From Piromyces finnis finn (taxonomy: Eukaryota > Fungi > Neocallimastigomycota): DNA of 64,000 nt. The stretch is from the NCBI GenBank assembly GCA_002104945.1, contig MCFH01000016.1, forward strand, positions 558,001-622,000, read 5' to 3'. Numbering within the stretch: the stretch's first letter is position 1; the number at the start of each line of letters is the position of its first letter. Below the pieces are notes generated by a model, which saw nothing but the letters and a program-made list of their open reading frames with translations, was not told the origin of the DNA and made no database searches. Below, in pieces: positions 29,546-47,973 of the stretch. The position numbers were made by a program, and so were the translations under genes.

Positions 29546-32500
29546 TCATTTACAAAGACCAAATTGAGATTGACATCCTTTAGTTATATAACAGTAGGAA
29601 GATGTTATTCCACAATATCCCTTTGCACTACAACATAAATTAGAATCACAACTACCAAAAATACTGCCACACTTACAATTTCCATAATTTATTTGACATC
29701 CTAAAGATGAAGAGCAGTATGCTGTTGTTGATCCACAATATCCCTTTTTACTACAACATTGTCCTGCACGACACTCACCAATGTCTTTACCACATTTACA
29801 GGAACCGAAATCTGATTGGCACCCTTTATTCATATAGCAATAGGCTTCCGTTTTTCCACAATAGCCTTTTGCACTACAGCAATGACTTGATGGACATTTA
29901 CCAATGTTTTCGCCACACTTACAAGTACCATAAATTGGTTGACATCCTTTCTCCATGTTACAATAGGTAGCAGTAGTTCCACAATAGCCTTTTGCACTGC
30001 AACATTTTCCAGAAGGACAATTACCATAACCTTCACCACATCTACAATCTCCAAATTCAGATTGACACCCTTTGGAGGCATCACAATAAGCAGCAGTTGT
30101 TCCACAATAGCCTTTTGCACTACAGCATTGTCCTGAAGGGCATTTACCAATTCCTTCACCACATTTACAAGTACCAAAGTTTGATTGGCATCCTTTTTCT
30201 ATGCTACAATAAGAAGCGGTTGTTCCACAATAACCTTTTGCACTACAGCATTGACCTGAAGGACAATTACCATAACCTTCACCACATCTACAATCTCCAA
30301 ATTCAGATTGACACCCTTTGGAGGCATCACAATAAGCAGCAGTTGTTCCACAATAGCCTTTTGCACTACAGCATTGTCCTGAAGGGCATTTACCAATTCC
30401 TTCACCACATTTACAAGTACCAAAGTTTGATTGGCATCCTTTTTCTATGCTACAATAAGAAGCGGTTGTTCCACAATAACCTTTTGCACTACAGCATTGA
30501 CCTGAAGGACAATTACCATAACCTTCATCACATCTACAATCTCCAAATTCAGATTGACACCCTTTGGAGGCATCACAATAAGCAGCAGTTGTTCCACAAT
30601 AGCCTTTTGCACTACAGCATTGTCCTGAAGGGCATTTACCAATTCCTTCACCACATTTACAAGTACCAAAGTTTGATTGGCATCCTTTTTCTATGCTACA
30701 ATAAGAAGCGGTTGTTCCACAATAACCTTTTGCACTACAGCATTGTCCTGAAGGGCATTTACCAATTCCTTCACCACATTTACAAGTACCAAAGTTTGAT
30801 TGGCATCCTTTTTCTATGCTACAATAAGAAGCGGTTGTTCCACAATAACCTTTTGCACTACAGCATTGACCTGAAGGACAATTACCATAACCTTCACCAC
30901 ATCTGCAATCTCCAAATTCAGATTGACACCCTTTGGAGGCATCACAATAAGCAGCTGTAGTTCCACAATAGCCGTCTGAACTACAACATTGTCCTGAAGG
31001 GCATTTACCGTAACCTTCACCACATTTACAAGTACCAAAGTCAGACTGACATCCATTGTTAAAGGAACATAGTTCATCAGAGGTTCCACAGAAACCATTT
31101 TTACCACAACATTTACCTTCTGAACAAGCACCAATGTTTTCACCACATTCTTTACACTTTCCGAATTCTGGTTGACATCCCATTTCTATAGAACAATGAG
31201 CATCGGACGTTCCACAATAATTATATTTACTGCAACATTCACCGTTTGGACACTCACCAATTCCTTCACCACAAGCTTTGCATTTTCCATATTTTGATTG
31301 ACATCCTTTTGATATTGAACAAAATTCACTGGTTGTTCCACAAAAACCGTCACTACTACAACAATAACCTGAAGGACAGCTACCATAATCTTCTCCACAT
31401 TTACAATTACCATATTCTGGTTGGCATCCATTTGATATTCCACAATAATCAATGGTTGTTCCACAATATCCTTTTGCACTGCAACATTGACCTTCTTTAC
31501 ATGAACCGCGAAAACTACCGCATATAATTCCACTCTTTGGACATTTCTCTCCATTATTATCATAATATGATCTATATTAATGGATTAAAGGTTAATAAAT
31601 ATATTTAATTTTTTATAAATATGATATTTATGAAAAATATAATGAATTATATTTTATGAATTTCTTTGTTATAGTTACAATTTTAATTCTGAATTTAAAA
31701 TCTCATTAGGAATACTCTCTATACAATTATTGCTTAAATTACTGATTAACATAGGTTTTATATTATTCAATTAAATATGTATATATATTTAGATTAATTT
31801 ATAATTTTAAATACTAAAAATATGAACTTAAAAATATAGCTTTATCTTTTTTTTTTAGTTATGATATGATAAACTTACACAGTTGAATCTTTTGGTAAAT
31901 TTCCAAGTTCTTTAGGAATTGTTGATAAGATATTATTTTGTAAATGTCTATATAAGGAATATTTTGAACATTAATAAATAGAAATTAATATATTATTAAA
32001 CTTTCCAAATTTTATTATTATTATTACAATAATAATAATAATAATAATAATAATAATAATAATAATAATAATAATAATAATAATAATAATAATAATAATA
32101 TAATAATAATAATAATAATAATAATAATAATAATAATAATAATAATAATAATAATAATAATAATAATAATAATAATAATAATAATAATAATAATTGCATA
32201 TATTTAAAATAACTTTAGGTGTACTAACAAATTCATTAGTTCTGTTAATTTCCCAAAATCTTTAGGAATAGTAGTTAATTGATTGTCATTTAATTTTCTA
32301 AAAATTTTGGTTTAAATAAATATAATTAATAAATATATTTTTATAAATGTAATATTATATACTTAAAACTTTTTAACTATACAAGAAATAAAGTTTTGAT
32401 AGGTTTCCAATTTCTACTGGAACTGATGTTAATTGATTATTATTTGCCCATCTTAATTTAATAATATTATTAAAAGAGTTATAATTAATATACATTTAAT

Positions 32501-34043
32501 TAACAATTATGCATGCTTTTTCTAGTAAAATACTAACAAATATAGAAGATTTGGTATGTCTCCAATTGTTGAAGGTAGTAAAAATAATTGATTACCATCT
32601 AGCCATCTATTAAATATTTAGTGTAATATTATAATATAATAATATAAATGAAAGATTATTTTATTAAAATATATTTTTTTTGTATTATGAAAATTTAACT
32701 ATGTTTAATTTTCCTAAAAATAAAAATTAACATATACAAATATTCTAGACTTGATAAACTTCCAATTTCTGAAGGAACTGATGTTAAATTATTTTCATAT
32801 AAACCTCTTTTTTTTTTTGATTTAAAAAATTAATTATATAAATTAAAATTTAATATTTAGAAAATTATTTTTATTAAAATATAAATGGATAATACATTTA
32901 ATTATATACTTACAATTCCATAAGTTTAGATAAATTTCCAATTTCCTTTGGAACGTTGGTTAATTGATTATTACCTAAAAGTCTATATTTAAAAATTTAT
33001 TTATTGAATTGATTGTAATAAAAAAAAATTAATTATATTATATTTAAAAAAAAAAAAAGTTATATTATGTTTTTAAATGATCATATACTAACAAATATAC
33101 AAGACTTTTTATATTTCCTATTTCATTTGGGATGTTTTCTATTTGATTATCTTCTAAATTTCTTTATTAATATTATATAATATATATATTAACAATAATG
33201 CTATTAATTATTTTTTTTATAAATAATATAAAAAATTATATACAAAATTTTCAAACTGGTTAAACTGGTGATTCCATTTGGAAATTCAGTTATTTTATTA
33301 TTTTTTAAATATCTATTTATTTATAGTTTTGAATATATATATAATTTAATTAATGGAACACTGGAAATAATATTTATAAATAAAAACGAAAATTTACAAT
33401 TCCTCAAGATTTTCTAAATTTCCAATTTCTAAAGGAATTTCTATTAGTTCATTATCGTCTAATTTTCTATTTGAAATTTTATAATTTAAATAAATATTTA
33501 TATTTTAATGACATTTAAATATGAATTTATGAAAAATAATAATTATGTATTAATAATAATAATAATAAATAAAAAAAAAAAACCTTTAAAAAGGTAATTT
33601 ATTTTTACTTACAAACTTTTAAGATTGATTAAATTTTCAATTTTAGTAGGGATTTCTGAAATGCTATTTTGAAATAAATTTCTATAAAAAAAAAAAACAT
33701 TAAAAATTTGTTGAAATTTTAAATATCACTTTTATATTTATTTACTAACAGTGTTTTTAGGGATATTATTTCAAAAACTATGTCGGGTATACTAGTTAAT
33801 TCATGATTATGAAGATCCCTGTTAAAAAAATTAAAATTTAATTAGTTTTTATTTTATTTATTTTTTTTTTTTAAAAAATAAAAAAATAATAAATGAAATT
33901 ACTGACAATTCAGTTACACTTTCATCATCTTCGTTACAATATCTGACCAAATTGATAAGTTCATTTTTTAATTCTTTACATGAATATGCATATGTAAATG
34001 AATATAGTGATAATAGTCTTATTAAATATATTAACAATTTCAT
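29546..34043 (-). CDS. Secreted LRR protein (12 LRR exons) with 16 C-terminal hevein/CBM18 chitin-binding domains
   Basis: Signal-peptide-like exon MKLLIYLIRLLSLYSFTYAYSC. Eleven 72-nt and one 63-nt phase-2 exons each encode xLxxNxLxxIPxEIGNLxxL. The terminal exon ~31579-29546 is one open frame of 16 eight-Cys repeats (CG...C...CCSxKGYCG...YC....GCQ..FG.C). Confidence 0.93.
32023..32194. repeat. Intronic (AAT)n tract with one phase shift
   Basis: Directly visible in an intron of the first LRR-CBM18 gene. Confidence 0.95.
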
Positions 34044-47600: not shown

Positions 47601-47973
47601 TTTGTTCAATTCCTCGGTAGTTAAACCATAAATATACATTGATCTTTTTATTTAAATAAAAGAATAAAATAATAATAATAATAATAATAAAATATATCAA
47701 AATTTACATGGTTATTTTCTTTTTAAGTTTATTTTATTAAAAGACTATTTTATTATGTTTATTATTTACTTACAAAGAATTAACTTTTCCTTGGTCATTT
47801 ACTCCACAATCATTAAGATTTAATTGATATCCTCTAAATTCGTCATAAAAATCTTTTCCCTTATTTTTTTCTAATAATAAATTATAAATTTCTTCACAAT
47901 CATTAGTTGATTCCTTTGCCAAAACAAGGCAAGAAAGGGAGGAAACAAGTGCAAGCTTTTGAAATATTTTCAT
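44607..47973 (-). CDS. Secreted LRR protein with C-terminal Thr/Lys-rich tail (copy B, tandem paralog of 38638-42229)
   Basis: Same exon chain at offset 5744/5840; start MKIFQKLALVSSLSCLVLA at 47973; shorter tail ending ...IKKTSIKK* at 44607. Confidence 0.88.

Follow-up and report, generated by a model that had tools for sequence, protein, structure and literature searches.

The question raised by a cluster of four neighbouring genes in the anaerobic gut fungus Piromyces finnis, here called G1 to G4, is what kind of proteins they encode, where these proteins might be held and whether the four are one gene in four versions. The genes lie in a stretch of 64,000 nucleotides of contig MCFH01000016.1 (C68:558001-622000; hereafter the window, the positions of which are used unless stated otherwise), within an assembly of 56,455,805 bp in 232 contigs. 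Each gene consists of short exons for a putative signal peptide, a Cys-pair cap and a series of leucine-rich repeats (LRRs), followed by a terminal exon that is the sole large exon of the gene and that codes either for tandem hevein-type CBM18 modules (G1 and G2) or for a Thr/Lys-rich tail (G3 and G4). On sequence comparison the cluster is made up of two tandem pairs from two subfamilies. The interpretation that is somewhat favoured here is that G1–G4 are secreted LRR binding proteins, tethered to the wall where they carry CBM18, and that the same ectodomain family may be sent elsewhere by other end modules. We infer their secretion, wall binding and outward display, and the existence of an LRR ligand, from the sequences.

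The gene models were rebuilt from stop-free segments joined at frame-keeping GT/AG sites. All four genes are intact, without internal stops, lie on the minus strand and span exactly positions 29546-47973, as a preliminary description of this DNA had it; the signal peptide, Cys-pair cap, LRRs and single terminal exon of differing content that it attributed to all four are seen in each model. The spliced models were compared locally with fetched proteins and loci, Pfam scans were run exon by exon, and folding was assessed using database relatives as proxies. The features of the cluster are the following.

G1: 34043..29546, minus strand; 14 exons, 994 aa, comprising a signal peptide and Cys-pair cap, 11 LRR exons of 69 nt, one 63-nt capping exon and 16 CBM18 units
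G1 exon 1: 33907..34043, minus strand; signal peptide and Cys22/Cys36
G1 LRR exons E2-E13 with their introns: 31679..33818, minus strand
G1 terminal exon: 29546..31571, minus strand; 16 hevein-type CBM18 units (PF00187)
G2: 37278..34851, minus strand; 11 exons, 429 aa, comprising a signal peptide and Cys pair, 8 LRR exons of 69 nt, one 63-nt capping exon and 4 CBM18 units
G2 exon 10: 35573-35511, minus strand; 63 nt, phase 2-2; corresponds to exon 13 of G1; weak match to the LRR profile (9.0 bits)
G2 terminal exon: 34851..35391, minus strand; a short Thr/Ser linker, then 4 CBM18 units
G3: 42229..38638, minus strand; 14 exons, 582 aa, comprising a signal peptide and Cys26/Cys56 cap, 12 irregular LRR exons (66-117 nt) and a Thr/Lys tail
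G3 terminal exon: 38638..39196, minus strand; 186-aa tail, 41% Thr, 29% Lys, pI 10.9, 48-nt repeats
G4: 47973..44607, minus strand; 14 exons, 539 aa, a near-identical copy of G3 with a 143-aa tail and an unrelated promoter region
Duplicated block, copy 1: 38590..42241, strand not assigned; partner of 44565-47986
Duplicated block, copy 2: 44565..47986, strand not assigned; partner of 38590-42241

The introns of the four genes are uniform. All are GT-AG (49/49) and all are in phase 2 (49/49), with lengths of 68-325 nt, and they interrupt each repeat at the same site, splitting the codon after the second Leu of the LxxLxLxxN motif. The one-repeat exons are symmetric and in phase 2, so gain, loss or skipping of an exon leaves the reading frame intact, and repeat number might plausibly vary in this way. 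In G2, for example, exon 10 is flanked by a TATATAG acceptor and a GTAAAT donor, and the frame is kept whether the exon is included or skipped. The DNA between 28 and 50 kb of the window is extremely AT-rich (G+C 13-34%). Most of G1 intron 11, which at 281 nt is the longest intron of that gene, is an (AAT)56 microsatellite of 98% purity (32028-32194).

In each gene a hydrophobic N-terminus is encoded by exon 1 together with two paired Cys residues (C22/C36 in G1, C21/C35 in G2, C26/C56 in both G3 and G4), and the pair is invariant across a 20-member family alignment, where it corresponds to C29 and C50 of the relative P0121. No relative turned up when metagenomes were scanned with the first exon of G3. 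In G1 and G2 the 19 LRR units are each exactly 23 residues long, one to each 69-nt exon, with the consensus xLxNNxLTxIPxEIGNLxxLxxL. The highest entropy within this unit (2.9-3.1 bits) is found at the x positions around LxxLxL, which form the concave face in solved LRR proteins. The 12 units of G3 and G4 are irregular, with lengths of 22-39 residues; each has an L.NL..L end, and the phase and position of the introns are as in G1/G2. The cluster thus has the tandem 20-30-residue LxxLxLxxNxL units characteristic of LRR proteins.

When single LRR exons were scanned against Pfam, 7 of 10 gave a match, and the families matched were exclusively LRR families (LRR_4/LRR_8/LRR_1/LRR_14; E 5.6e-4 to 0.09); each exon alone falls below the cut-off, as expected because a sequence of 22 residues is short. 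A 23-residue profile built from the 19 G1/G2 units scores 28-47 bits on its training exons; for the more regular of the exons of G3/G4, none of them used in training, the scores are 10-14 bits. The best background score elsewhere in the window, on both strands, is 7.8 bits, leaving out G2 exon 10 (9.0 bits). The LRR signal in G1–G4 is thus above chance, and homologues at 33-41% identity carry precomputed LRR families.

The fold was assessed with P0121, a relative that in the tree is as near to G3/G4 as is P0039, an LRR and CBM18 protein of Anaeromyces robustus. The AlphaFold2 model of P0121 (pLDDT 88.9, pTM 0.82) is an unbroken strand–helix solenoid from residue ~47 to 637. The nearest solved folds are Leptospira LIC11098 (TMt 0.85, 29% identity), SHOC2, LRRD1 and the ectodomains of plant LRR receptors, and the top matches in the PDB are LRR proteins throughout. 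The curved solenoid of the LRR class is accordingly present in this proxy, with G1–G4 themselves represented by their relative. The nearest solved relatives by sequence as well as fold are the Leptospira LIC LRR proteins, SHOC2 and the ectodomains of plant GSO1, MIK2 and FLS2 (E to 6e-63, for P0121). None of these contains CBM18, however, and SHOC2 is cytosolic, while the plant receptors have a transmembrane helix and a kinase. An ESM Atlas look-up of P0083 gave generic LRR clusters only, with scores <=0.90, and was not used as evidence.

The terminal exons of G1 and G2 match PF00187 far above the Pfam cut-off of 27.8 bits. In G1 there are 16 stretches (341.5 bits, E 2.9e-104) and in G2 there are 4 (95.7 bits, E 1.8e-27); the 8-Cys pattern is present in both, which confirms that these are true hevein-type modules. 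The G1 array has a period of 123 nt by Tandem Repeats Finder, and its centre is a 246-nt, two-unit higher-order repeat with 87% matches, which indicates recent amplification. Of the four positions of the hevein binding site (Ser19, Trp21, Trp23 and Tyr30), three are retained and one is altered: among the 20 units of G1 and G2, Ser19 is present in 19, position 23 is aromatic in all 20 and position 30 is aromatic in 18, whereas position 21 is Lys in 16. Binding of N-acetylglucosamine (GlcNAc) polymers by these units is plausible on this pattern, and avidity from 4 or 16 units would be likely.

No CBM18 is detected by Pfam in the terminal exons of G3 and G4; G3 gives only a low-complexity HC2 match below the cut-off and G4 gives no match. 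Counted from the last residue of exon 13, the tails are 186 and 143 residues long, with 41-50% Thr, 29% Lys, a pI of 10.8-10.9 and 48-nt repeats. Ser-Pro(3-5) repeats of the extensin type are absent from them, the Thr/Lys repeats having only 5-7 Pro, and a search for a CBM18 remnant downstream of G3 and G4 found none. The stretch is probably O-glycosylated, and the G3 and G4 proteins are probably soluble or retained by charge alone; the tail may also be what remained after loss of an anchor, instead of an anchor in its own right.

Other means of attachment were looked for in all four proteins. Hydropathy averaged over 19 residues on the Kyte–Doolittle scale (KD19) stays below 1.6 past residue 25, so that the hydrophobic N-termini are the sole hydrophobic segments and no transmembrane helix is seen. 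The hydrophobic C-terminal signal that typifies glycosylphosphatidylinositol (GPI)-anchored wall proteins is likewise missing, all four C-termini being hydrophilic or Cys-rich. Neither the CBM10 dockerin (PF02013) nor any catalytic family is found by Pfam in the terminal exons. Hydropathy and Pfam thus agree with the preliminary description, which had reported no transmembrane, GPI-like, catalytic or dockerin segment.

The idea that the four genes are variants of one gene, a single family with four swapped tails, was rejected. G1 and G2 are 38-40% identical over their full length and come out as sisters in the tree built from the N-terminal 230 residues (Shimodaira–Hasegawa-like approximate likelihood ratio test, SH-aLRT, 91). 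Between G1/G2 and G3/G4 the identity is ~31% and is confined to the LRRs (E 1e-7 to 1e-8), which together with the tree points to two subfamilies. The members of the second pair are, by contrast with this distance, almost the same gene. The duplicated block of G3 and G4 is 99.3% identical over 2782 nt, with 1 mismatch in 1756 nt of intron, and of the 9 codons that differ 7 are within the first 20; upstream of the block the DNA is unrelated. This is a very recent duplication or a conversion tract, with an edge in exon 1 within the signal-peptide codons. Outside the signal peptide there are 2 non-synonymous and 0 synonymous differences, which is far too few for a test of selection. Besides the tail repeats, the only sizeable difference within the block is in intron 12 (39366-39579 in G3; 45206-45323 in G4), where a 39-nt (21+18) tandem repeat differs in copy number and gives a 96-nt difference in length. 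The set of modules originally listed, namely 16 CBM18, 4 CBM18 and two Thr/Lys tails, is therefore right as to content, but since G3 and G4 are recent duplicates the cluster holds only three independent genes and the two Thr/Lys tails are not independent observations.

Relatives of the same scaffold end in a variety of ways. Residues 17-385 of G3/G4 align with residues 19-374 of P0039 at 36% identity (E 1e-43), and further scaffold relatives were found by searching with this matching LRR part of P0039. Among these, P0122 continues into a Thr-rich stalk, a transmembrane helix and a cytoplasmic tail, P0127 has two CBM10 dockerins at its C-terminus, P0132 has a Thr/Lys linker and then CBM18, and P0125, P0126, P0128 and P0130 have a Cys-rich C-terminal cap only. 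The called protein P0131 (L030; JGI 3300037579, Ga0411629_06504) ends in a Thr/Lys stretch, and its contig runs into a CBM18 coding stretch at 1866-2252; an intron or a frame change has probably cut the public gene call short. As one scaffold is found with CBM18, a transmembrane helix, CBM10 dockerins or no anchor, the modular C-terminus is a trait of the whole LRR family. The notion of an anchor encoded as an exchangeable last exon survives to this extent, that the C-terminal modules vary among relatives. It is not supported for the Thr/Lys stretch as an anchor, because in P0132 and P0131/L030 this stretch precedes CBM18 and is there a linker, not a proven anchor.

In the tree, the group of nine to which G3 and G4 belong (SH-aLRT 92) is a mixture of CBM18, transmembrane, no-anchor and Thr/Lys ends. 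Over the whole tree the CBM18 label changes at least five times, only one of these changes being forced by strongly supported branches, in a sample that is biased to CBM18 as most rows were found with a CBM18 query.

The family extends well beyond this cluster. A word search with the G1 terminal exon matched 514 CBM18 proteins; among the 120 of these that were listed, 39 carry LRR Pfam families, the named ones being from Anaeromyces robustus, Piromyces finnis and Neocallimastix sp. 'constans'. By these matches the family is large and belongs to anaerobic gut fungi (judging by the named matches, Neocallimastigomycota). The same 120 proteins show CBM18 fused to CotH, CE4 deacetylase, serpin (PF00079), subtilisin, GH18 and CAP domains, as well as to transglutaminase-like domains, GDSL lipase and two DUF families. 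Given this variety of partners, CBM18 is a general tag for secreted proteins in gut fungi. The gene structure also recurs in another genus. The P0039 gene of A. robustus has single-LRR exons of 69 nt and a co-oriented LRR-CBM18 gene just upstream, the two genes lying at 4200-7978 and 10001-16901 of L031 (MCFG01000001.1), so that, judged from this locus, both one-repeat exons and the tandem arrangement are shared across genera. The first of the L031 genes has no Pfam match on record, although there is a match to CBM18 in the 3' part and to the N-terminus of P0083 in the 5' part. Another family member, P0095, is a single uninterrupted open reading frame (ORF) of 529 aa on a JGI contig of 1915 nt, which fits a transcript without being proof of one.

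A genome-wide census of genes combining signal peptide, LRR and CBM18 had been proposed in the preliminary description and was carried out in part. PF00187 matches at least 78 loci in the P. finnis genome (150 of 320 candidates scored), and a non-random sample of 26 CBM18 loci was inspected, the counts from which are lower bounds. The G1/G2-built profile proved too narrow for this purpose, detecting 1 unit only at the P0049 locus, where an LRR-CBM18 gene is known, and tblastn with database LRR parts was added; genes with short exons (for example L028) were detected by the profile only, and intron-poor genes by tblastn only. LRR coding sequence lies upstream of CBM18 at C211 (P0049), C162, C79 and C196 (four G1-type exons) and, by alignment, at C40 and C188. 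Counting G1 and G2, the genome has at least eight LRR-CBM18 genes. At C79:713112-714350 (L021) and C162:498957-500237 (L002) the LRR part is contained in one or very few exons, a single one at C79, and the family thus holds both intron-rich and intron-poor members.

The literature search found no functional study of an LRR-CBM18 fusion, in line with the preliminary description, which knew of none, and the Neocallimastigomycota papers found to mention leucine-rich proteins do not treat the family. The architecture is a variant of extracellular LRR proteins with wall-binding modules on the one hand and of CBM18 fusions on the other, and it is already present, unnamed, in public proteomes. A protein annotated 'LRR, CBM10, CBM10' (A0A1Y1VM89) has been listed among cellulosome candidates without a function (PMC12421816). 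It can be set beside P0127, with its two CBM10 modules, as a counterpart of the non-enzymatic dockerin proteins of fungal cellulosomes; G1–G4 have no CBM10. Similarly, G1–G4 lack the transmembrane helix of LRR receptor-like proteins and kinases, which is present with a cytoplasmic tail in P0122.

Three further systems resemble the cluster in design. Batrachochytrium dendrobatidis also has tandem hevein-type arrays within single genes, a lineage-specific expansion of CBM18 and chromosomal clusters of paralogues. Its CBM18 genes are divided into tyrosinase-like, deacetylase-like and lectin-like classes, with no LRR class, and the 11 CBM18 units of one gene were called 'one of the largest' expansions (PMC3569864). 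The LRR class of the gut fungi is thus absent from that description, and the 16 units of G1 exceed the 11. Plant LRR-extensins (LRX) share with G1–G4 the signal peptide, a Cys-containing N-terminal cap, the LRRs and a repetitive, basic, glycosylated C-terminal domain that associates with the wall, and both lack a membrane anchor and a catalytic part. They differ in that the tails of G1–G4 are hevein/CBM18 or Thr/Lys instead of Ser-Pro extensin, the LRR unit is of the 23-residue SHOC2/Leptospira type, and the sequence relation that was shown is limited to the LRR motif. The internalins of Listeria combine one LRR scaffold with alternative C-terminal retention modules in a multigene family with tandem paralogues: InlA has LPXTG, InlB has GW modules and InlC is secreted, giving a covalent wall anchor, non-covalent wall binding and none, respectively. 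This is an analogy of design and not homology. Internalins are bacterial and have 22-residue repeats with an Ig-like inter-repeat domain, whereas the anchors of the gut-fungal family are CBM18, a transmembrane helix or a CBM10 dockerin. The resemblance to LRX and internalins therefore concerns, by analogy, how the design works and is not a matter of membership, as the defining features of both are absent from G1–G4.

On the interpretation favoured here, the multivalent array of 4 or 16 CBM18 units would bind the chitin of the fungus's own wall after secretion, non-covalently and by avidity, and this attachment would hold the LRR horseshoe at the fungal surface. The concave face, with its variable x positions, may then bind a protein or glycan from the gut, whether on a microbe that is a partner or a competitor, on an enzyme or on a plant surface. 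In G3 and G4 the same kind of ectodomain would be carried on a long, very basic Thr/Lys stretch of the sort that forms a stalk between LRR and CBM18 in relatives. Across the family the scaffold could be directed to the wall by CBM18, to the membrane by a transmembrane helix, to the cellulosome by a CBM10 dockerin or, with no anchor, to the medium, a choice of end modules that parallels the alternative anchors of bacterial internalins. The reading given in the preliminary description, that of diversifying extracellular receptors, decoys or enzyme inhibitors displayed on the wall, is a reasonable one and finds support in part.

Several points weigh against this interpretation. Lys occupies the position of hevein Trp21 in 16 of the 20 CBM18 units of G1/G2, so that the chitin affinity of each unit, and even the identity of its ligand, is uncertain, and CBM18 could bind foreign GlcNAc polymers instead of the fungus's own wall. 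G3 and G4 are without any recognisable anchor. High variability of the concave face is typical of every LRR protein and is hence no test of selection. Finally, LRRs are missing from about 20 of the 26 CBM18 loci sampled, which argues that CBM18 is a general-purpose tag and says little on the role of the LRR.

The uncertainty about the ligand of CBM18 opens the way to a reversed arrangement, in which the modules bind GlcNAc polymers of other organisms (peptidoglycan, methanogen pseudomurein or other fungi) and form a bridge between the fungus and partner microbes. Specificity could be altered by the Lys that most units have in place of Trp21. In Caecomyces churrovis, moreover, no CBM family is larger than CBM18, and no CAZy class is induced more strongly by a methanogen, whichever the substrate; for this the authors propose physical association, that is, fungus–methanogen contact, or else wall remodelling (PMC8665504). 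The tables of that paper give CAZy modules only and leave non-CAZy parts aside, so the domains beyond CBM18 in the induced genes do not appear there (PMC8665504). Such an adhesin also needs a second attachment to the fungus, and no transmembrane, GPI or dockerin segment is seen in G1–G4; the arrangement is considered rather unlikely. A comparably low probability is given to a protective role, with the CBM18 array coating wall chitin against bacterial, protozoan or fungal chitinases and the LRR acting as a hydrolase inhibitor in the manner of polygalacturonase-inhibiting proteins (PGIPs). PGIPs are extracellular LRR inhibitors, and the long CBM18 arrays without a catalytic domain, as well as the fusion of gut-fungal CBM18 to serpins (PF00079), another class of inhibitor, are consistent with such a role; chitin protection has been discussed for the lectin-like CBM18 genes of B. 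dendrobatidis (PMC3569864). The sequences point to no particular enzyme target, however, G3 and G4 have no CBM18, and the LRR unit is the 23-residue SHOC2/Leptospira-like type and not the plant-specific 24-residue unit of PGIPs.

The pair without CBM18 admits two further explanations. G3 and G4 might be decaying or truncated derivatives that lost the CBM18 part of the exon in a rearrangement and have no function of their own. The use of the Thr/Lys stretch as a linker before CBM18 in relatives, the lack of a CBM18 remnant downstream and the different tail lengths of the two copies would agree with this. Both copies nevertheless keep 14 open exons with canonical splice sites, and as their coding sequences differ only twice outside the signal peptide, non-synonymously each time, and their introns by a single mismatch in 1756 nt, they are too young for decay to be visible; decay is regarded as improbable. 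The likeness to LRX, lastly, suggests a module of wall integrity or peptide signalling, in which a wall-fixed LRR would report the state of the wall on binding a peptide that the fungus itself secretes. The layout of signal peptide, LRR and wall-insolubilising or wall-binding tail is the same, the G3/G4 tail is basic, repetitive and probably glycosylated, and a transmembrane-anchored relative with a cytoplasmic tail exists (P0122). Against this stand the absence of extensin Ser-Pro motifs and the size and variability of the family, a better fit to outward recognition than to housekeeping, and we know of no RALF-like partner in fungi. This is very unlikely, and the least probable of the four explanations.

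Wall-tethered LRR binding proteins, the interpretation preferred above, lend themselves to a wider and quite speculative extension, to which only a small probability is attached: gut fungi might have a surface recognition system of their own, built from diversifying LRR ectodomains held on the chitin wall, membrane or cellulosome, recognising methanogens, bacteria or plant surfaces, with one-repeat exons letting the binding surface change in frame. A survey of 101 genomes that predates those of gut fungi found fungi to be without extracellular LRR (pattern) receptors (Soanes and Talbot, 2010; PMC2939053). P. finnis, an early-diverging fungus, has a large family of putatively secreted LRR proteins. 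The ten genes of Pecoramyces F1 that are most strongly down-regulated in co-culture include one described as 'LRR receptor-like' and one for a 'chitin binding protein' (PMC6414434). If the methanogen-responsive CBM18 genes include LRR-CBM18 fusions, these would be direct candidates for the recognition or holding of other microbes by gut fungi, with relevance to rumen consortia and engineered co-cultures.

Outside the cluster, ORFs at 28163-28990 (minus strand) and 26080-27375 (plus strand) resemble, by eye and from the translation only, a Cys-rich RING/ZZ-type zinc-finger protein and an ankyrin-repeat protein, respectively. At 7982-9939, simple repeats in the form of very long stretches of codons for Asn, Ile and Asn-Thr give rise to spurious ORFs on both strands. 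On the same contig, ~16 kb past the end of the window, a further CBM18-coding ORF of 653 aa is found on the plus strand (C68:637652-637909).

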